Origin: Zygophlyctis sp. KS116
Taxonomy: Eukaryota; Fungi; Chytridiomycota
NCBI GenBank assembly: GCA_054661495.1
Contig: BAAFSQ010000042.1
Location: 24,065 to 56,064 of the forward strand
Direction of reading: 5' to 3'
Length of the DNA: 32,000 nucleotides
Shown: in pieces, positions 454-21,353 of the stretch
Position numbering within the stretch: position 1 is the stretch's first letter
Layout of the letters: every line of letters begins with the position of its first letter
Notes under the pieces: generated by a model
Told to the model about the DNA's origin: nothing
The model's input: the letters and a program-made list of their open reading frames with translations, nothing else
The model's database searches: none
Position numbers and translations under genes: made by a program

Positions 454-1897
454 TTATTCTTCAGTTTCCTCGTGATGAGTCTCAAAAGTTCCAGAGACAA
501 GTGCTAAAGTACTGCAAAAAGCAATAAAATATACCTATAATTAGTATAAAAAATATCTTACAAAAGTTTCAATGTAAAGAAATGCTCTATTATAGGGAGT
601 GTTCACTGTTTGAGACCAGACATTAGGAAAAATTAATGTCGCTGTTAGTACACCCAATTGCTGAATAACTTGAATAGAAGAAAACATTGCGCCTTGGGAT
701 TCATGAGAAACAGATTTTGATAAGAGTCCCTTTGCAGTCGGAGTACCAAGCGCACTAAGTCCTTCAAAAGTGACAATGGCTAAAATCATCCAGCCAGCAG
801 TAGCAGTAGACATTAGAAAAGCTCCAAAAGTCATCACCATGAGAGAAATTCGCAAAATCCAAAGATCAAATAAAATAGACTGGGTAAATATTCGTTTTAC
901 TATTGGAAATATGAGAACCATTGTTAATAGTCTTCCAAGTGCTAATATTAGCAAGTAAATTCCTTGATCAAACGAATCCCATCCAAAAGAGAAGGCTGCC
1001 CATAAGAAAAAAGTACTTGCTCCTCCAATTGTAATTCCAATAGAATACATTACAAAAAACAGTATAGCTCTATAAGTTGCGTATGTTTCACCAAAAAAGG
1101 TGATAATTGATTTTACAAATTCTATAGGCGAAATATTCAAACTGTTTGGGCTGCTTTCCTTATTGAGAGATTCTTTAACTACTAGAAGAATGTATAACAG
1201 AACAAAAATTTGGATTCCTAGAGAAACCTCAAATACCCGTTCCATTCCATTTTCCAGTCCTCTATAAAGGGCACCACCAAGCACAGGTCCAATAGTGAAT
1301 CCTAGAAAAAATGTAGTTTCAAGAATCACGAATACAGAAGTTCTAGACTCTGCAGTGCTAATATCTGCAATATAAGCAAAAGATGTAGAAACCAACATTC
1401 CCCATGATCCTAAAAATCCACCAATCAATCTCTCTATAGCCAATAGCCATAACGGTAGCCGTAGTTGCATGATCAACAATATGGCGACATTGGAAAGTAT
1501 TGCAGATCTTAAACGTAAAATGTATATTGACTTACATGACCGGCAAAAGCATGATTGGCTTTCTACCAGTACTATCTGATAGTTTCCCCAAAAGCGGAAC
1601 CGAAAGTAGTGATGGTATATTTGCGAGTAAGGCAAATGTCATTTCCCATTTAGCCGTCGCCGATTGAACATTTGGCAATACTCTACATTCTTCCCATGAT
1701 ATAGTACTTGATCCATAATTTTCCTGACAAATATACAAAAGTAGCCATTGTTGCGTTACATTTATAATCTGACTGAATGCTAAAATATGCAAGAATAGAG
1801 CTGGGAGAAGCAGAACTGGACTATTTGCACCTTGTTTAGGGACCGATGTAGAATCAGGAATAATCTCTTCTAATAGAGGTTCTTGCTCATTGTCCAT
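454..1897 (-). CDS. MFS transporter (SLC46/TetA-like)
   Basis: GKLSDSTGRKP MFS motif A, AYIADIS..ESR, about 12 hydrophobic helices. Introns 1508-1535 (28 nt) and 535-561 (27 nt) join the ORF fragments. Stop TAA at 454-456. Confidence 0.88.
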
Positions 1898-1917: not shown

Positions 1918-3063
1918 CTAATATGCAAGGGTTTTGTACATGAAAGAAACTGAGTCCTTGATCATTAATGGATCCAGATCAACAGCCTCATAATGCATAG
2001 CTGCCACAACCCATAAATGTGGACCGGTTAGTACTGAAATAGAAACTACAAACACGGCCCATACATTCACATCTACCAGAGTTAGTGAATGCATTCCAAA
2101 AGCTAAAAGATATGCTCCAGTCATACTTAATAAAGCTATTAAAGTGAATGGTGCTGTAAGATAAAGAAATCTAGCTAAGTCGGTCCATTCAACTTTTCTA
2201 ATTGGAGAAAATGCTGGATTTGATGACTGCTTGAGTGAAGATATTTCTGATAGCATATGTCCGATTGAGTGCCAAGGTCCTAAATAGACTATAAATCCTA
2301 CCAGAGGATTCATAGAGTTGAATAAAATCCAAAACATTGCAGATTTTAATATTTCATATATCCAAACTTGAGAACTTGGCTCCTGTTTTATAACTGGAAA
2401 TTGTGCCGGTGTAAAATCTTTCAGCTCTATTAAAAGATTTACAATTGCAAAAGTTGTTAAAAGTAGAAAATGTTGACTCACCATTATCCTGTGAAGCCAG
2501 ACATAAGAATAAGATGAGTCTGGAACCTTTATAAACCTTTCAACAATTGATATAGTTAGGTGTGGTCTTGTAAGAATCGCTAAAGATAAGATGAAAACTC
2601 CTCTTGAAAGGTATAATATTTGTTGATAGATTGATTTTAATTGAATGTAATCTAGATCCCCCTATCTTTAGAATTTTAGAAATACCTCTCCAAAATGATA
2701 TGCTGACAATGCAAGAAAAATCAGAAATGTAAATGAAGTCTGATACTGCCAAGACACTGACCATAAAACCATTATACTTAAATAATGAAAATAAAAGATT
2801 ATTCTAGGGATTATCCAGGCCATATTTGATGACTTCTTTCCTTTGTCAAAGTTTCTGGTATAGTACAACTGATAGAAAACAATATGATCTAATGCACCAT
2901 GTGGAATAACAGTCAGAACCATGAGTAAGATGATGAGTAGTCCGGAAATTGATTCAAAGTATTTTGGAGAAAGATAAGAGAAGAGTATGGATAATGCTGT
3001 GAGGAGTAATCTACCAAGTTGAATACCATGAGAGATCATTTGTTTGCTGGAACGTGATGTCAT
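1918..3063 (-). CDS. blh: Brp/Blh-family beta-carotene 15,15'-dioxygenase
   Basis: Multi-TM protein with the family His motifs in order: IPHGALDH, SAYHFGE|GD, PWHSIGH, LTGPH. One 24-nt intron (2662-2685) joins ORFs 2668-3192 and 1918-2484 in frame. Start ATG at 3063 is assumed. Confidence 0.85.
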
Positions 3064-3141
3064 TGCATTGTGTGATCTGCTGTGTGATCTAAATTCTATT
3101 TTTAAACGGCAACTTACCGCCGCAAACCGAAACTTGTTAAA

Positions 3142-3615
3142 ATGGCTGATCCTGATCAATCTCCTCCAAATGATGGATCCTCTAATGTGCAAGTCAATTA
3201 CATCATAGTCCCTCTTCTACTTATCCTGATCATCATTGTTGCTATACTCCTAATGAAGTATCAGACTTGGTGTGCATGGAAGTTTTTCAAGCCAAAAGTA
3301 ACCAAGCAAGAGGAACCGGTACAAATAAGTCATCTATCCATGTTAAGAGTGAGCTCTCCTCCACTTGATCAATCAAAATTGCAGTCAAAAGAGACTCCGA
3401 TTGTACTAGAACTTTCAAATTCTGCAGAAACTCGCAGATCTTCAAGCTCAAGATCTTGGATTTCAAAGTTTAAGAATTCAAAGGATTCTCAACAAAATAT
3501 GATTGGCTCAATTTTAGATGAAGATGAAGAGAATGAAGTTACTATTTTAGAAAGTAATGCCATTGTGTATTCAGGTACTCCTCCTTCTTATGGACAATCA
3601 CATTTGGATGTTTAA
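3142..3615 (+). CDS. Hypothetical single-pass membrane protein
   Basis: 157-aa ORF with one strongly hydrophobic helix (IIVPLLLILIIIVAILLM), a Ser-rich tail and a C-terminal PPSY (PY motif). Divergent from blh. Confidence 0.7.
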   Translation: MADPDQSPPNDGSSNVQVNYIIVPLLLILIIIVAILLMKYQTWCAWKFFKPKVTKQEEPVQISHLSMLRVSSPPLDQSKLQSKETPIVLELSNSAETRRSSSSRSWISKFKNSKDSQQNMIGSILDEDEENEVTILESNAIVYSGTPPSYGQSHLDV

Positions 3616-3882
3616 TAATTTTTGGGCTTATCAGTTGAAGCTGATTATATGTACAAGACTGTAGTTCAAACGGAAAATACTAAACTCAAAATGGTTGGCG
3701 TCAGTAATCAAATATTCATACATGGTGTTTTTCAATGGCAATTTGGCAAATAGTTTTTTACTCAAACCAATAGAATTTATTAATTCTTTTCAAGATATTT
3801 GGATGAGATAGATGTAACTTAAGTCGTCAAGAGCAGCATAACCGCACTCGAAGCCCTCTGTGACAAAAATCTATTTTTTAGA

Positions 3883-5319
3883 ATGAGTCTTCAATGCATC
3901 GAGAGATTGCCTTGGTATGATCATCAAGGATTGTCTTCTCAGCCATACATTATCGGCATTAGCGGTGGATCGGGTTCTGGGAAAACTTCAATCGCTAAAA
4001 AGATTATTGATGATCTGGCAATCCCTTGGATCACATTGTTGAGTATGGACTCATTCTATAAATCATTAACTGAAGATCAGAGAGAGCAAGCATACAGAAA
4101 GTAAGTCATCCGATATAAAAAAAAAGTGAATATGACTTTGATCATCCAAACTCATTTGATTACGATATTTTATATGATTCATTACTGAATCTCAAGAAAG
4201 GCATCAAGGTTGATATTCCAATGTATGACTTTACAACGCATTCAAGGTAATTTTTTAATTTCTAAGCTTTAGATTACCGCAAACTCAAAGCTTGTATGGG
4301 GCCAATGTAATAATTTTTGAAGGGATTTTTTCTTTTCATGATAAAAAAGTTCGAGATCTATTGGACTTGAAAGTTTTTGTTGCTTGCGATGATGATATAA
4401 GACTGGCAAGACGCTGTAATTTCGTCTAATATTTTAAGATCACAGTGAAGAGAGATATCTCTGAAAGAGGTCGTGATTTGAATGGTGTCTTGCATCAGTA
4501 TCATAAGTTTGTTAAACCAAGCTATGATACATATATTAAACGTACTATGGATTATGCAGACATTGTGCTTCCAAAAGGAATAGATTCACAAGGTTTTATT
4601 TTGATTTTTATTATTATTTAGCATCAATGGATCTCATTATTCAACATGTTTTACTTCAGCATATGAAAAGATGTTTTCCCTTTAAAGATCTTTTGAATAC
4701 TATATGCTTTGATGAAAAGGCGATCCCATCTACACTACATGTATTGGATCAAACTCCATATCTCAAGTCATGCATTGAAAAAATGAATGATGAGAAATTG
4801 GAACTGAAAGAATTTTTATCTATTTCAGATGAATTAGTAGTAATGCTACTTCGTTATGTTTCAACTCTTTTTGAAAACAGTAAAGAATTAACAGTATCAA
4901 AAATCTGCGGTGTCTTTTTAGAAAGATATCCTAATTCTATAAAGATTGATTTTAATCTAGTTTATACAGATGCATCTTTTGGGAAATTATGTATACGCAC
5001 CTTATCTAATGGAGAACCTGGACTCTATCTTTGTGACGTTCCAGAAGATATCTGTAATAGAAAGGTTATTGTATTTGATGCTCAATGCTCAACTGGATCT
5101 GCAGCTGTCATGGCTATTCGAGTATTATTGGATCATTGTGTCTTGGAGGAAAATATCATCTTTTGCTCTTTGGTTTGCTCAAGATCATCTGCTATTCTCA
5201 TACATAGTATCTTTCCAAAAGTTGTTATGGTGAGCTGTAGATTAGAGAACAGCATTACAGTTCACAAGTTTCCAGTTTTGGAAAACTTAAATACTTCACC
5301 TGATTCGGAACGTAATTGA
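3883..5319 (+). CDS. URK1: Uridine kinase with C-terminal UPRT-like domain
   Basis: GGSGSGKT P-loop, [28 protein letters not shown]-terminal [12 protein letters not shown]. Introns 4101-4126, 4247-4272, 4416-4445, 4593-4621. Confidence 0.93.
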
Positions 5320-5830
5320 TTATTTTCCCTCAATAAACTCAATATTACATCTCTCATATAATATTTGTAAATCTTCTCCATCTCTAAAAAAAATTCGCTT
5401 GTATCCACCCGTAAAAGATCCATAATCATCAGTATCTGCTATGTAAATCGTTTTGCATTTAGCATTATCTACCCGCTACCCGCTTCCCCCATCCTCGATA
5501 TTTCTGATATCAGTTAATATTTTATGAGGTGCGGAATCATTGACAAGACCATCTCCACTACTGATTATTCTCTTCATATCATTGCCAGTTCTAAGTATTC
5601 TTTCCGCATTTTAAAAGACAAGAATTAACTGACAAAGTAAGACAACTGAAGTTGATTGTGGCGCGTAATCAAAACGCTGATAGTCCAAGTTCGGACGAAA
5701 TAGTGCGGTACAAAGTTCAAATGTGATAAAGACTTGAAATTGAATTTGTATTAGTTATCTAAGGAAATTTAAACGGTTTTCTTAATAAATCTAATATTTC
5801 CAGAGTTACGTCATTTCAAATAATCAAAGA

Positions 5831-7943
5831 ATGAACAATGAGAGTGAGGAAGTTTATGATGATGTATCAGGAGCAACCTGTATAGATGTCGATGCTGTTA
5901 ATGAGCTTGCCAAGCAAGGTGATTCGTACATCAGTAATGATATTCATCAGGTCCAGAAAGCAATTGATTTATTTCTGAACTCTGATTTCTCAAACGCAGA
6001 ATTATTTTTAAAGACTCAATACTGTAAATCTCTATATTACACATTTGGGTATGGGACTATTCTCTTTTTAAAATCGATAATGACTTTTGATCCGGCAGAT
6101 ATTCATGATTGCTCAATAGCTTTAGAAAATTCTGTACAATTGGCTTCAATTTTGCGGAAACCGCAAGGTTTTATATCATCTATAAGTGGATATTTTACTG
6201 GGAAAGGTTCCAAGGAAGTTGCTCATTTAAAAATCATGAGTAAATTAGAAAGGCATGCAGAATTGGTATATGCAGAATCATTTCTTATTAAAGCACAATT
6301 ATCTCTGGTTACTGATAAGAATATGGTTGCTTTCATAAGAGAAGGACTTAAAATTAGAGCATCATATTCCATATATAAGAATATGTATAGATTTTTAAGA
6401 AAAGTATACAAGGAAGATGGAGAAGATGGCTTTAAAAAGTATAATATTGATGAACATTTTGTTTCTGGTGTACTTTTTGGAAATGGCGCATTCAATATGA
6501 TTCTGTCAATGATGCCATCAAAGTTGCTTAAATTATTTGAATTTATTGGATTTAGTGGAAATAGGCAGTTCTCAATGTCTTGCTTAGAGACTGGTGCTAA
6601 ATGGCCTAAAAGAGATACAACAATGTGTTATCCAGAGCCAAAAAAAGATATTCCAAAGGATAAAATACTAGTTCCTTTTAAACTTCCAGATGGGGTCTCT
6701 GGAAATCGAGCATTTTTGTGTGATCTTTGTTTGCTAGTATATCATATAGTGTTTTCAAGTATGATTCAACTTCCTGATAGCAACATGCCCTTGGCAGGAA
6801 AAATGGTTGATATGCAATTAAAAAAGTATCCGGAAAGTTTTATTTTTCTTGGATTAAAGGCAAGATTAGAGCAATCCAAATGTAACCCCATGCTTGCTGA
6901 AGCTGAATATATAAAAGTAATTGAAAATCAGCTAGATTGGAGAAACTTGACTCATGTTTGTTATTGGGATCTTGGGTTTTGTCAAGCAGCTCAAGGAAAA
7001 TGGAAAGAAGCTGCTCAAAGTTTTCAAGTTTTACTTGCAGAATCAAAATGGAGGTACGATATCATTTCCTGTTTCTAATTTCACAGTGCTGCTATTTATG
7101 CATACCTCCAAGCTTCATTTTTATATCATGCAGACAAGGAAAAATACGCTGACAAAATTCTGGAACTAATGGATTCTGTTCCAAATTTAACAAGAAAAAT
7201 TGCAGGAAAAAGCGTACCTTTTGAAGTATGATATTTCATTATTGATTTCCTAGAAATTTGTGTCTCGAAAAGCAAGAAAGTTTAAATCACAAAACAATCG
7301 ACTTCTATTACCTGGATATGAAGTAATTTATATGTGGACTGGTTTTGATATAATCCCTTTATCACATATGAACACTGTATTAAGTGAAATATCAAATCAT
7401 CTCACTGACCTTGATTCACAACTTGAAAACTTCCAAAAAACTGGAAAAAATGCAGACTTGATTCCTTATGAAACATTTAATGATGACATTGCATTAGCTA
7501 GATTTTTAAAAGGAATTGCTATTCGTGAATTGAATTATCCTACTAGCAATACGATAATACCAGCGAATGAATTAGTTTCTATTAAACCAACCACAACACA
7601 AATATCACAATTAACACTTTCATCTAAACAATTATCATTTATTACTGCTGTTGCAGATCAAATAGTATTCGACCACTGGATCTTACCATACTCAAGATTT
7701 GAATTAGGACAAATTTATATGAGACTTGGAAATTATAAATTAGCAAGAAAAGAGTTTAAAGCCGCCAAGAATGGCGGCTACACAGACAAGGAGACTGGAA
7801 TTCTTCGTAAACGCTACTCTATGGAAAATTCATTGCATTTAAAAACCCATAATTGTCTAGTAAAATTGACAGTATTGGAAATACTAGCAGGACTTACTGT
7901 AGAAGATTCTGAAGACGAAGAGATTGTTGAAGAGTCAGACTAG
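5831..7943 (+). CDS. IML2/TTC39-family TPR protein
   Basis: HAELVYAE, FIREGLKIRASY, FVSGV.FG.G.FN..LS, IGFSGNR, RKIAGKSVPFEKFVSRKARK, YSMENSLHLK. Introns 7054-7086 and 7226-7253. Confidence 0.9.
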
Positions 7944-17063: not shown

Positions 17064-17657
17064 ATGTTTTTGATTTACGTCGTTTTACTATTAATTGCTG
17101 TAAATGCTGTAAAGAGTCCTCCAAAGACTTTACAAATTGGAATTAAAAAAAAGGTTGATCCATGTCCAGTCAAGAAAACTGAACGTGGAGACCAAGTGTC
17201 TATGCACTATAAAGGAATGTTGTTTGGGTCAACAGAGGAATTTGATTCTTCGTTTTCTAGAAATCAACCATTTGACTTTACTCTTGGGACTGGTCAAGTA
17301 ATAAAAGGATGGGATCAGGGATTGTTGGATATGGTATTTTATTAAGAATTTATTCTAGTGTCCTGGTGAAAAGAGAAGACTTGTGATTCCTCCTGAATTG
17401 GGATATGGACAGTCTGGGTAATTTTAAGATTCTAAATTAATAGTGCAGGTGATAAAATTCCTCCAGGTTCAACCTTGGTTTTTGAGGTTGAATTATTGAA
17501 AATTAAGGATAGTCATGGTCATGGTCATGGACACAGTCATGATGACTATCCACATATGCCTGGACATGATGAATTTCCAGAATTTAGTCATGATACTCAT
17601 CGTGATTTGGAAGCAGAAGCAGATGAGGTCTTGGGATTACATGATGAGGATCTTTAA
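17064..17657 (+). CDS. FPR2: ER FKBP-type peptidyl-prolyl isomerase (Fpr2/FKBP2-like) with His-rich tail
   Basis: Signal peptide, [31 protein letters not shown]|[18 protein letters not shown]-terminal ...HDEDL. Introns 17334-17358 and 17418-17443. Confidence 0.92.
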
Positions 17658-18424
17658 ATATGAATACCCTCGAAAGCTTCTTCGATTGTATGAGATGAGT
17701 CCAACTTCTTTTTTCTCTTTTTATCCAAGGCTGCTTCTTTTCTAGCCTTTTTGGCAGCCTTTTTACGATCTTGAGCTCGGGAATACTTTACAGGAACTTG
17801 GGTAATAGTACTACTCTTTACGATTGGCTCTGATGAGTCTTGTAAATTTAATTCATACAATTCATCCAAAACTAGTCCGAATTTACCATTATGTTTATCT
17901 AATAGTATTCTAATTTTTTCTGTATCATTACAACCACTTATAGACATGATTTGCTGTATAATTCTACTAGTTTTTTGAGAGTCTTTTAGATATTCTGGAG
18001 TTTTAAAATCTTTAGATGCAATTGTTGATGCATAATGTTCAAAAGAATAATAAATTAGATATAGTATTTTCTCTGCAGATTCAGATTTAATTATTAGAGG
18101 TACTACATGTGCTTGATAAATAACAATTGTGACATTTAAAGTCTTTGAAAGTGCCACTAATTCTAAATTTCCACCATAAACTCCATTTTTTGCCATTCTA
18201 CTAGTATAATCAGATATTGGTTCTTGCATAAAACAAGAGAAATCATTTGGATTATTTTTAATAAATGTTATAGCTTTAAATCTCAATTCCAAATGATATT
18301 GATCATTACCATAATACTGATGACTAATAGCTCTAAATAAACAATTTCCATCTCCCTGTACATCGAATTCCTCTAGTCCGATTGATTTTAAAGTATTAGA
18401 AATATTATAAATTTCAGATTTCAT
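17654..18424 (-). CDS. OTU-domain deubiquitinase (OTUD3/Otu2-like)
   Basis: GDGNCLFRA catalytic Cys loop, YGGNLEL, EHY catalytic His, basic C-terminal tail. ATG 18424 is the only ATG before the catalytic motif. Confidence 0.9.
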   Translation of the reverse strand: MKSEIYNISNTLKSIGLEEFDVQGDGNCLFRAISHQYYGNDQYHLELRFKAITFIKNNPNDFSCFMQEPISDYTSRMAKNGVYGGNLELVALSKTLNVTIVIYQAHVVPLIIKSESAEKILYLIYYSFEHYASTIASKDFKTPEYLKDSQKTSRIIQQIMSISGCNDTEKIRILLDKHNGKFGLVLDELYELNLQDSSEPIVKSSTITQVPVKYSRAQDRKKAAKKARKEAALDKKRKKKLDSSHTIEEAFEGIHI

Positions 18425-18839
18425 AATCTTTATTAGTGTAATGATGTTTAACAAAACGATAACCTTGAATCAATTGTGCACCTAGAGAATTTAGAATTAT
18501 TACTAGTCATGCTATTTCAACATAACCAAATCTTACATTCATTTGCTGCATGACATGCAAATAACAGATAATTTCTAGGCTGAACTTCAATCGCAAATTT
18601 CATAAACATTATTGAGTATAGCGCAAGTGCACCAGTCATTTTTCCAGAGATGAATTCTGGAGATTTTTGAGTATCAGCAATGGCAGCCAAAGGAAGACCC
18701 CAATTAGCCACCGGTCCCCAAAAATGAGTAGACATGAGATATGTCCTCTGGTAATAAGATTAAAATAAATTACAAACTCTGGGCTTTTGACATACTGGAT
18801 CGTCTTTGCTGTCAAACTTGATGAAACTGGACGAGACAT
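18414..18839 (-). CDS. MPC1: Mitochondrial pyruvate carrier 1
   Basis: [45 protein letters not shown]|[10 protein letters not shown]. Introns 18748-18773 (26 nt) and 18482-18536 (55 nt). Stop TGA at 18414-18416. Confidence 0.95.
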
Positions 18840-19025
18840 TTCACGATTGCACTAACCCGCCCCGTCCTCAACAGTCTCAACTCTAGCATTCAAGGTGATG
18901 CAGAGTATGAGATTGATCGCTCACGTCATTCCTGCAACAGAAATTCTCCTAGATTATATTTCAATTACTCTTTTTCATCGCTAATAAACTTGGCTACTAA
19001 TTAAAGAAGCATTACTTGATATCAA

Positions 19026-19388
19026 ATGATAATCATTATTATGCTGTCGATCATAGTAACTGATGCCTATAAAGCAGAAAGAGGTCAAAGATGCTCACCG
19101 GAATTTCTAGGAATATTTGAAATCATTAAAGGAATCAAACGATTTCCTACTTGTGATGATGGATTGTATTGTGATGATGATCTTGACATTTGTGTCTTTA
19201 AAGCAGGAGAACTTCAAGGTTGTGATCCAAGTAGGAGAGAGTGTCAGGATGGACTGGATTGTCATTTGGGTTATAAAGTCTGCATTCATCAAACAATGGT
19301 AGGACCTAGCTTATTAGAAACTATACTCCATAATTTATTATATGGAGCTGCACAAATTATGGATTTCTTCTTTCTGAGCCAGATTTAA
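19026..19388 (+). CDS. Small secreted cysteine-rich protein
   Basis: N-terminal hydrophobic signal, 8 Cys in two G..C...C.DGL.C......C repeats, hydrophobic C-terminus. Confidence 0.7.
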   Translation: MIIIIMLSIIVTDAYKAERGQRCSPEFLGIFEIIKGIKRFPTCDDGLYCDDDLDICVFKAGELQGCDPSRRECQDGLDCHLGYKVCIHQTMVGPSLLETILHNLLYGAAQIMDFFFLSQI

Positions 19389-19435
19389 GTTACAGTTTTG
19401 GCCGATATTGGGTTGTTTTTCAGGCTCTTAACTTT

Positions 19436-21353
19436 TTACTCACCTTGCAATAAAACCTTTTTTGTAAAATTAGAGGGAAATAGACCAATTCTCTCCTTTC
19501 CGTCTAATCCAAATCCAACTGCTTCCCACCATCCATCATCATTTGTGTCAAAAACTGCTAAAAGTTGTCCCTGAAAGATTGATAATTCTTCTGGAGCTGC
19601 TGCGTGATAATCATACAAGACTTGAACTTTTTTTAAGTATTATTGGAAAAGTACCATGATATAGAATCTTTTTTACTCTGGAAAAATCATATATATTATA
19701 GTGTATCTGAGGTTGTGGGATTACTTCATTTTCAATTTCCTTTTTAGGTCTGCTTAGGGAATGATGAAGAGGAAGTTTGGGCTGTTCTAGGACTCCTTGA
19801 GTCTGTCCAGGTCGTTCTAGGGATTGGATTTTTAGAGTATTAATCCCTTCTGTAAGTCTGGATTGTTCCTTGGATTGGGTATTTGCAGGTATAATTCCTT
19901 CTATAAGTCCAGGCTGCTCCTTGGATTGGATGTTTGGAGTATTAATCCCTTCTATAAGTCCGGGCTGCTCTTTGGATTGGATGTTTGGAGTAGTAATCCC
20001 TTCTGTAAGTCTGGATTGTTCTTTAAATTGGCTTTTGGCAGGAAAAGCTGCATGTTCCTTGGATTGGCTTTTTGCTTCTGCCTCTAGTAATTGACTCTTT
20101 GTAGGAATAAATCCTTCTGTACGCACAGATTGTTCTAGTAATTGACTCTTTGTAGGAATAAATCCTTCTGTACGCATTGACTGACCTCGCAATGACTGCC
20201 GTTGTTCAACCCGGTATCCTTGAGTTTGGCCTTGTGGTATTCCTTGTGATTGATCAAGTTTTACAGGATCAGAAGCAATAAAATTCCCATTTTCAGAGCT
20301 CTTTGAAACTGAATTGACTATCTTTAAGCGTGTAATTCTTACAAGACGATACTGAAAGATTTCCAATAAACATATCCAAAAAAGAACTTTTCTTTTGACT
20401 CTTACTCGCTAAAGAGTCATACTGCTCAGCAGTTTCAATAGAAAATGGAACATAGACTGGAACTTCTATTCCTGTAAATTTTGCGTGTTTTACCTTTAAG
20501 AGTATTTCCTGTCCTACTAGTCCTTAAAAATTCTTGAATATCATCCTCAAAATTACATTTTTCTAAACTTGTCCTAATTCTTTCACATCCTTCATCCTGT
20601 TCAACCAATGCCTCTGATAAAACATTTGTAAAACTCCAAATTTTTTCTCTTAAAAATTTGAATCTATCCCTATCCATCTGTTCTGCTTCCTTACAACATG
20701 CAGTCATTGTTTTTTCCCAATTTTTCCAAGAATCTTCCAAAACAATAGCATTATGTTGATATTCTGAATCTATATTCTGAATTTCTCTATTAAATTTTTC
20801 AATTTTTGCCTCTCTTTTACTTGCATCTTTTGCATTTAAAATCACATAACCGGTTTTTTGATTCAAAAGTTCCTTTTGTCTTTGAAAGTATTTATCTTTT
20901 GACTTGTAAAACAAGATTTCAGTCTGATTTTTCATTTTCAAACTCTTTTCTAAATTTTGTTTATGAAATTTCCTATTTGCAGTTTGATAATTTACAAAAT
21001 CTACAAGAGGATTTAAGACATTTACTTTTAGATTTTCTGCAATTTTGAGTGAATTTTCACACTTTTTTTCCAATTCCTTTTGAAATATCCTTATTGTAGC
21101 TCCAAATGTCCCAACTTCCATCCATTCTCTTGTTTTCTGAGAGAGCCTAGCATATCTTTTCCCAGAATCTTCTTGTATTTGTATTTCTCTTGACTTTAGA
21201 TGTAATAAATTACTCTTTCAGAATTGCTATTAAAATTTCTGAATTCAATTGACAAGATTTGAGTCTTTTTAACAATACATTTAGTCCGACAATTTCATCA
21301 TCACTCTAAGACTTAGATGCAAAAATTACCCAAAACGAATCACAAAATTCCAT
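19436..21353 (-). CDS. F-BAR + SH3 protein (Cdc15/Hof1/PSTPIP-like)
   Basis: MEFCDSFW start, coiled-coil F-BAR ending DEGCERIRTSLEKC..EDDIQEF...RTG, C-terminal SH3 (VLYDY.A..PEELSI..DDGWW..GLFPSNF). Five short introns including 20472-20493 (22 nt). Confidence 0.9.
19815..20180. repeat. Coding 51-bp (17-aa) degenerate tandem repeat in the F-BAR/SH3 linker
   Basis: About 7 units such as QSKEQPGLIEGINTPNI. An exact ~42-bp copy lies at about 20084 and 20135, 51 bp apart. Confidence 0.85.

Follow-up and report, generated by a model that had tools for sequence, protein, structure and literature searches.

A Brp/Blh-type gene with a 24-nt intron as a candidate source of retinal for the rhodopsin-guanylyl cyclases of the chytrid Zygophlyctis sp. 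KS116

Introduction

How zoosporic fungi that carry rhodopsin-guanylyl cyclases (CyclOp/RGC) obtain their retinal is a question raised by a single gene in the genome of Zygophlyctis sp. KS116. Phototaxis in Blastocladiella needs retinal (PMC4046227), and native NeoR of Rhizoclosmatium globosum carries all-trans retinal (PMC12264004). The retinal pathway published for fungi with a zoospore eye names only a CCO-type oxygenase, which has been reported as missing in Rhizophydiales that have CyclOp; in Globomyces and Homolaphlyctis, phytoene synthase and desaturase were found and carotenoid oxygenase was not (Galindo et al., 2022; PMC9616733). The word blh occurs neither in that paper nor in its supplements, and its queries included the ChoanoV1 carotenoid set, which may be too distant to detect a chytrid Blh.

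Here, we analyze a blh gene within 32,000 nt of contig BAAFSQ010000042.1 (GCA_054661495.1, positions 24,065 to 56,064, forward strand; hereafter the window). An earlier note, made from the sequence alone, had read it as an alternative, possibly horizontally acquired retinal supply for zoospore light sensing. The presence of Blh in fungi is not new, being annotated automatically in NCBI and UniProt and listed in the sheet of Rius et al. (2023; PMC10016063), and the Zygophlyctis gene adds one more member to a family and a fungal clade that the databases already hold. That sheet lists, as uncharacterised, Blh of Chytriomyces confervae (the protein P0026), R. globosum (A0A1Y2CFE3), Synchytrium microbalum (A0A507C5Z0) and Catenaria anguillulae (A0A1Y2HS41). 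All four of these fungi carry CyclOp/RGC, and the accessible part of the publication draws no link from their Blh to CyclOp/RGC or to fungal vision. In the literature searched, we found no work joining blh, zoospor- and rhodopsin, and no assay of any eukaryotic Blh.

Gene structure and family assignment

The gene is encoded on the minus strand by two exons (2686..3063 and 1918..2661) separated by a 24-nt GT-AG intron in phase 0 (2662..2685), which contains in-frame TAA and TAG codons. Exon 1 comprises 126 codons, ends in HFGE and carries His55 (PHGALD) and His123 (HFGE), while exon 2 encodes 247 aa plus the stop codon, starts with GDLDY and carries the WHSIGH and LTGPH motifs. The predicted product is a multi-pass membrane protein of the Brp/Blh family of about 373 aa. 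The intron, the coordinates and the motifs PHGALDH, HFGEGD, HSIGH and LTGPH are thus as the earlier note had described them, and its family assignment is borne out by consecutive matches of both exons to the Pfam BCD profile PF15461 (cut-off 28 bits), with 28.1 bits for exon 1 over profile positions 2-68 and 72.4 bits (E 6e-20) for exon 2 over positions 71-267. The exons were scanned one at a time, and full-length comparisons used database relatives of the protein. A genome scan reading through the intron scored 102 bits against PF15461 and returned the gene (1918-3063) as the only BCD locus of the assembly. Taken singly, the exons reached 30.8 and 62.4 bits against TIGR03753, whose cut-off of 95.25 applies to the whole protein. 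Neither exon matches PF03055, the CCO-family profile.

Comparison with relatives points to splicing at this site. The uninterrupted relative P0014 aligns with its residues 1-114 to exon 1 (59% identity) and from residue 115 onward to exon 2 (64% identity). A close environmental relative (L010/L011) has an intron of 23 nt, a frame-shifting length, which hence cannot be coding. An intron beginning with GT directly after HFG[EQ] also occurs in Polyrhizophydium, Entophlyctis helioformis, Chytriomyces (cf. hyalinus) and the environmental sequences L009 and L012. The coding sequence is uninterrupted at this site in L019 and L020, where the intron appears to have been lost. In the public annotation of the C. 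confervae protein (TPX76183.1), the conserved intron seems to have been translated, which adds 19 residues after HFGE. Seven short contigs from four metatranscriptome runs fall inside the blh coding region; no splice joint was seen in them, and one contig of 151 nt (2535-2685) carries the intron unspliced. Such intron-retaining contigs could represent unspliced RNA or DNA, and the predicted splicing therefore rests on comparison rather than on RNA. The dN/dS values relative to L010 are 0.11 for exon 1 and 0.19 for exon 2, both from small counts, and the gene is under purifying selection. It is a real, intact, host-encoded gene of two exons.

The predicted model of P0014, built from 101 sequences, is all-helical with a pLDDT of 94.3; an earlier fold from a five-sequence alignment had reached only 41. 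It superimposes on a bacterial Blh cluster with TM scores of 0.63/0.84 and an rmsd of 2.8 Å over 260 residues, and no solved structure in the PDB matches it. In bacterial Blh, His-21, His-78 and His-188, together with His-256, have been proposed to form the iron plane, with His-192 outside it (bioRxiv 10.64898/2026.08.06.743266). By motif order, the putative iron ligands of the Zygophlyctis protein, all encoded on the minus strand, correspond to exon-1 residues 55 (codon at 2899..2901, His-21) and 123 (2695..2697, His-78) and exon-2 residues 131 (2269..2271, His-188) and 215 (2017..2019, His-256), and the out-of-plane equivalent of His-192 to exon-2 residue 135 (2257..2259). No exception to the four plane histidines was seen among the 80 bacterial rows or among the fungal rows that cover the sites, and the Asp and Glu residues flanking the histidines are also conserved. 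The His-192 position is occupied by His in the subclade of the window's gene and in a few bacteria, by Ser, Thr or Cys in other chytrids and mostly by Ser in bacteria.

The chytrid protein thus shares with bacterial Brp/Blh (PF15461, TIGR03753; Blh of the marine bacterium 66A03, Q4PNI0) the Pfam family over its full length, the predicted fold, the four histidines and the His-192 equivalent, but identity is only about 22-30%. The bacterial 66A03 enzyme has about 275 aa and the chytrid protein is about 100 aa longer. The chytrid gene also differs from its bacterial counterparts in being nuclear, interrupted by an intron and located outside a rhodopsin/crt cluster, in an assembly in which no carotene synthesis was found.

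Genomic context, distribution and evolutionary origin

The neighbors of blh are eukaryotic housekeeping genes, including an MFS transporter, a uridine kinase and 3-HAO. The MFS gene (541..1897, minus strand) lies downstream, its ATG following the blh stop on the same strand after a gap of just 20 nt (1897-1918), with equal spacing in L010; either the UTRs must overlap coding sequence or both genes must share one transcript. This conserved neighbor is given as context, with no functional link implied. On the other side, a small ORF with a single transmembrane segment (3142..3615, plus strand) diverges from blh across a 78-nt gap (3064-3141), which suggests a compact bidirectional promoter; weak matches to this ORF stand beside blh in L012 and L019. 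A uridine kinase/UPRTase gene follows (3883..5319, plus strand), with short GT..AG stretches resembling the blh intron. Polyrhizophydium, E. helioformis and L012 share the gene order uridine kinase - blh - MFS, which was not seen in Chytriomyces. Longer-range synteny is seen with L019 (JGI 3300047128), in which OTU and F-BAR genes (2690-5837) lie near an intronless chytrid-type blh (33-37% identical); in the window, the same genes (17654-21121) are found 15-18 kb from blh.

Relatives of the gene were retrieved by word searches from many aquatic metagenomes and, among named fungi, from Chytridiales sp. JEL0842, Chytriomyces hyalinus, C. confervae, Irineochytrium, Polyrhizophydium and E. helioformis. 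These searches missed the known Blh of Rhizoclosmatium, Synchytrium and Catenaria, so that the list of carriers is a lower bound and their blanks for Globomyces, Homolaphlyctis, Batrachochytrium and Spizellomyces carry no weight. A quick maximum-likelihood tree of 82 rows unites the 19 fungal rows in one clade (SH-aLRT 100) on a long stem (0.82) and with large insertions, and it supports no bacterial sister of this clade; Blh of archaea, viruses and eukaryotes other than fungi, and probably most of the proteobacterial ones, lie outside its sampling. Within the clade, the named Chytridiales fall into one group and Polyrhizophydium pairs with E. helioformis. NCBI places the latter under Chytridiales, and the isolate groups near Batrachochytrium. 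The gene of the window lies in a subclade of environmental freshwater sequences, 45-64% identical to one another, which, in contrast to the named fungal Blh, keeps the His-192 equivalent and stands weakly (82) beside Chytridiales. With the proteins of C. confervae (A0A507FIQ9/TPX76183.1) and Polyrhizophydium stewartii (KAL2915001.1), it shares the clade, the intron position and 28-36% identity, and with P. stewartii also synteny; it is likely an orthologue of both, judged from these sequence comparisons. Synteny and the tandem RGC pair described below suggest that the host is Rhizophydiales-like.

The best GTDB matches in a pattern-limited scan were mostly from Bacteroidota (22-30% identity), and an ultimate prokaryotic origin of fungal Blh is plausible. 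No significant viral match was obtained, a 276-aa protein of ChoanoV1 reaching only E 1.4 (prob 0.54), and no Blh was found in scans of viral contigs or in plasmids. Four records titled Janthinobacterium, Brevundimonas and Synechococcus (L062, L077, L048, L029) carry Bacteroidota-like Blh and are probably mislabelled or mis-binned MAGs. Both Rhizophydiales and Chytridiales have orthologues whose intron sits at this site, and any horizontal origin can only be ancient. The suggested horizontal acquisition thus survives only as an ancient event for which no donor is supported, and not as a recent acquisition or a peculiarity of this genome; on comparative grounds, the chytrid gene is old and vertically inherited rather than a recent import.

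Rhodopsins and carotenoid metabolism

The earlier note had tied its light-sensing reading to the presence of rhodopsins elsewhere in the genome. Rhodopsin matches (PF01036) were identified at four places in the assembly, all on contigs other than that of blh, and two of them are complete RGC genes arranged in tandem on contig C71, with the helix-7 lysine and the cyclase motifs. The light-sensing link thus withstood the check that the note had set for it. In its RGCs the assembly resembles other fungi whose zoospore eye uses CyclOp/RGC, such as Blastocladiella and Rhizoclosmatium, and the Rhizophydiales with their RGC(b) clusters and NeoRh (PMC10622942). In the DNA inspected around the other two matches (C38 and C43), no cyclase was found; rhodopsin matches that lack a cyclase, like the tandem RGC pair, are also known from Gorgonomyces and Globomyces (PMC10622942). 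The C38 gene (L004, 1402-2067, minus strand) has an E-W-x-x-D motif that recalls the counterion positions of NeoR, with no cyclase motif in 7.5 kb. The divergent C43 gene (L005, 1504-2844, minus strand) has an RGC-like Cys-rich N-terminus, and the ORF that comes after the gene is kinase-like rather than a cyclase. As the earlier note had stated for the neighborhood, neither opsin nor carotenoid genes are linked to blh, and no prokaryotic-type rhodopsin/crt cluster surrounds it.

No CCO/RPE65 candidate (PF03055) was obtained in the assembly even at E<=10, with positive controls, and phytoene synthase (PSY), CrtI, CarR-type cyclase and CrtY were not found either. Squalene synthase was recovered, along with three polyprenyl synthase loci. 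Matches to the crtI family were read by eye and rejected as desaturases, since they look like renalase-like, amine-oxidase-like, glutamate synthase and fumarate-reductase-like proteins, and SQS/PSY matches were rejected as phytoene synthase in favor of squalene synthase and an NDUFAF6-like protein. As the assembly consists of 1175 contigs and its completeness is not given, the carotenoid genes are reported as not found rather than absent. No nuclear 18S rRNA gene was found in the assembly either. Contig C172 (L017/L018) carries a short bacterial-type SSU (1257 nt) and an LSU rRNA gene on opposite strands, which are probably mitochondrial.

The retinal-forming enzymes of the CCO family are soluble proteins with a beta-propeller fold. 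Blh shares with them (CarX, the Blastocladiella carotenoid dioxygenase, BCO1; PF03055) the presumed reaction and product and a four-His iron site, but its fold is unrelated. Because no RPE65/CCO match was found, Blh looks like the only retinal-forming candidate in the assembly, and not just like the alternative supply proposed in the earlier note. Three cultured chytrids (C. confervae, Rhizoclosmatium and Synchytrium) have Blh and CCO together and mostly also carotene synthesis (PMC9616733; PMC10016063), whereas the Zygophlyctis assembly shows neither CCO nor carotene synthesis.

A putative role in zoospore light sensing

We favor the reading, at a probability of roughly 0.65, that Blh makes retinal for zoospore photoreceptors from beta-carotene taken up from outside. 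Judging from family, fold and residues, the four histidines would hold Fe(II) within the bundle of helices, and with O2 the enzyme would split beta-carotene at its 15,15' bond, yielding two retinals. Genome content and the work on Blastocladiella and Rhizoclosmatium suggest that this retinal would be loaded onto the RGCs and serve photo-orientation of the zoospores. The beta-carotene probably comes from an algal host or from food material, given that genes for carotene synthesis were not recovered from the assembly; this is the weakest step of the proposal. Supply by the host is a published idea, the algal host having been proposed as the source of carotenoids or retinal in sanchytrids (PMC8371127). 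Counting against the favored reading are the low identity to bacterial Blh (22-30%), the lack of linkage to opsin or carotenoid genes, the fragmented assembly and the lack of a splice joint in RNA. The main weakness of the Blh-RGC link is that Blh and CCO mostly occur together in the cultured chytrids whose status is known. Given their CCO, Blh need not be the source of retinal in C. confervae, Rhizoclosmatium and Synchytrium.

Substrate and pathway could also differ from this proposal. Blh might mainly cleave other carotenoids, such as host xanthophylls or keto-carotenoids, or serve an apocarotenoid signal, the breakdown of host pigment or a modified chromophore, and the long stem and large insertions of the fungal clade would fit such a shift, as would the algal pigments that the enzyme would meet if the fungus has no carotene pathway of its own. 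Bacterial Blh is promiscuous (canthaxanthin, astaxanthin, epsilon-ring carotenes), and changes in the cavity floor shift its range (bioRxiv 10.64898/2026.08.06.743266). However, the RGCs need retinal, no other cleavage enzyme was found in the assembly, and the chromophore of native R. globosum NeoR is all-trans retinal (PMC12264004); we regard this explanation as unlikely. Retinal could instead be made from the fungus's own beta-carotene, possibly beside a CCO, with carRA, carB and the CCO gene missing from an incomplete assembly, as its 1175 contigs of unstated completeness and the phytoene synthase and desaturase of cultured Rhizophydiales (PMC9616733) would allow. Five separate family searches were blank, however, whereas every general isoprenoid gene that was looked for turned up, and we consider this distinctly unlikely. 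Genes of the carRA and carB types are often adjacent, and the blanks therefore count as fewer independent absences.

A further departure would leave the fold and metal site of Blh in place and assign them to a non-carotenoid lipid substrate unrelated to light sensing. The low identity to characterised enzymes, the housekeeping neighborhood and the failure of either exon alone to reach the TIGR03753 cut-off are compatible with it, but all histidines and the flanking Asp and Glu residues are conserved and all listed fungal Blh carriers of known status have RGCs, which makes it improbable. The BCD family is mostly prokaryotic, which might point to bacterial contamination or a recent transfer; this was rejected in view of the fungal clade (SH-aLRT 100), the synteny with Polyrhizophydium and the common position of a spliceosomal intron, to which eukaryotic neighbors and host-like GC can be added, and its probability is close to nil. 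The same observations uphold the earlier note's view that the gene is not a contaminant.

Implications for chytrid light sensing

The value of retinal formation by Blh as an explanation lies in joining two published loose ends, the presence of Blh in fungi and the missing oxygenase of CyclOp-bearing Rhizophydiales, a gap that Blh might fill. The conserved chytrid Blh is a directly testable candidate for the gap left by Galindo et al. (2022; PMC9616733) and, if active, would be the first characterised eukaryotic Blh as far as the literature searched shows. A wider, tentative proposal, which we hold to be doubtful, is that zoosporic fungi as a whole draw the retinal of their CyclOp/RGC eye from Blh, and not from the CCO that the literature assumes, as an ancient and dedicated supplier retained and lost along with the eye; in algal-associated chytrids seemingly without carotene synthesis, host pigment might then become the chromophore, perhaps a modified retinal, that guides the next generation of zoospores. 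If the carotene pathway is truly missing, the light sense of this fungus would depend on algal pigment, which would bear on how chytrids find phytoplankton.
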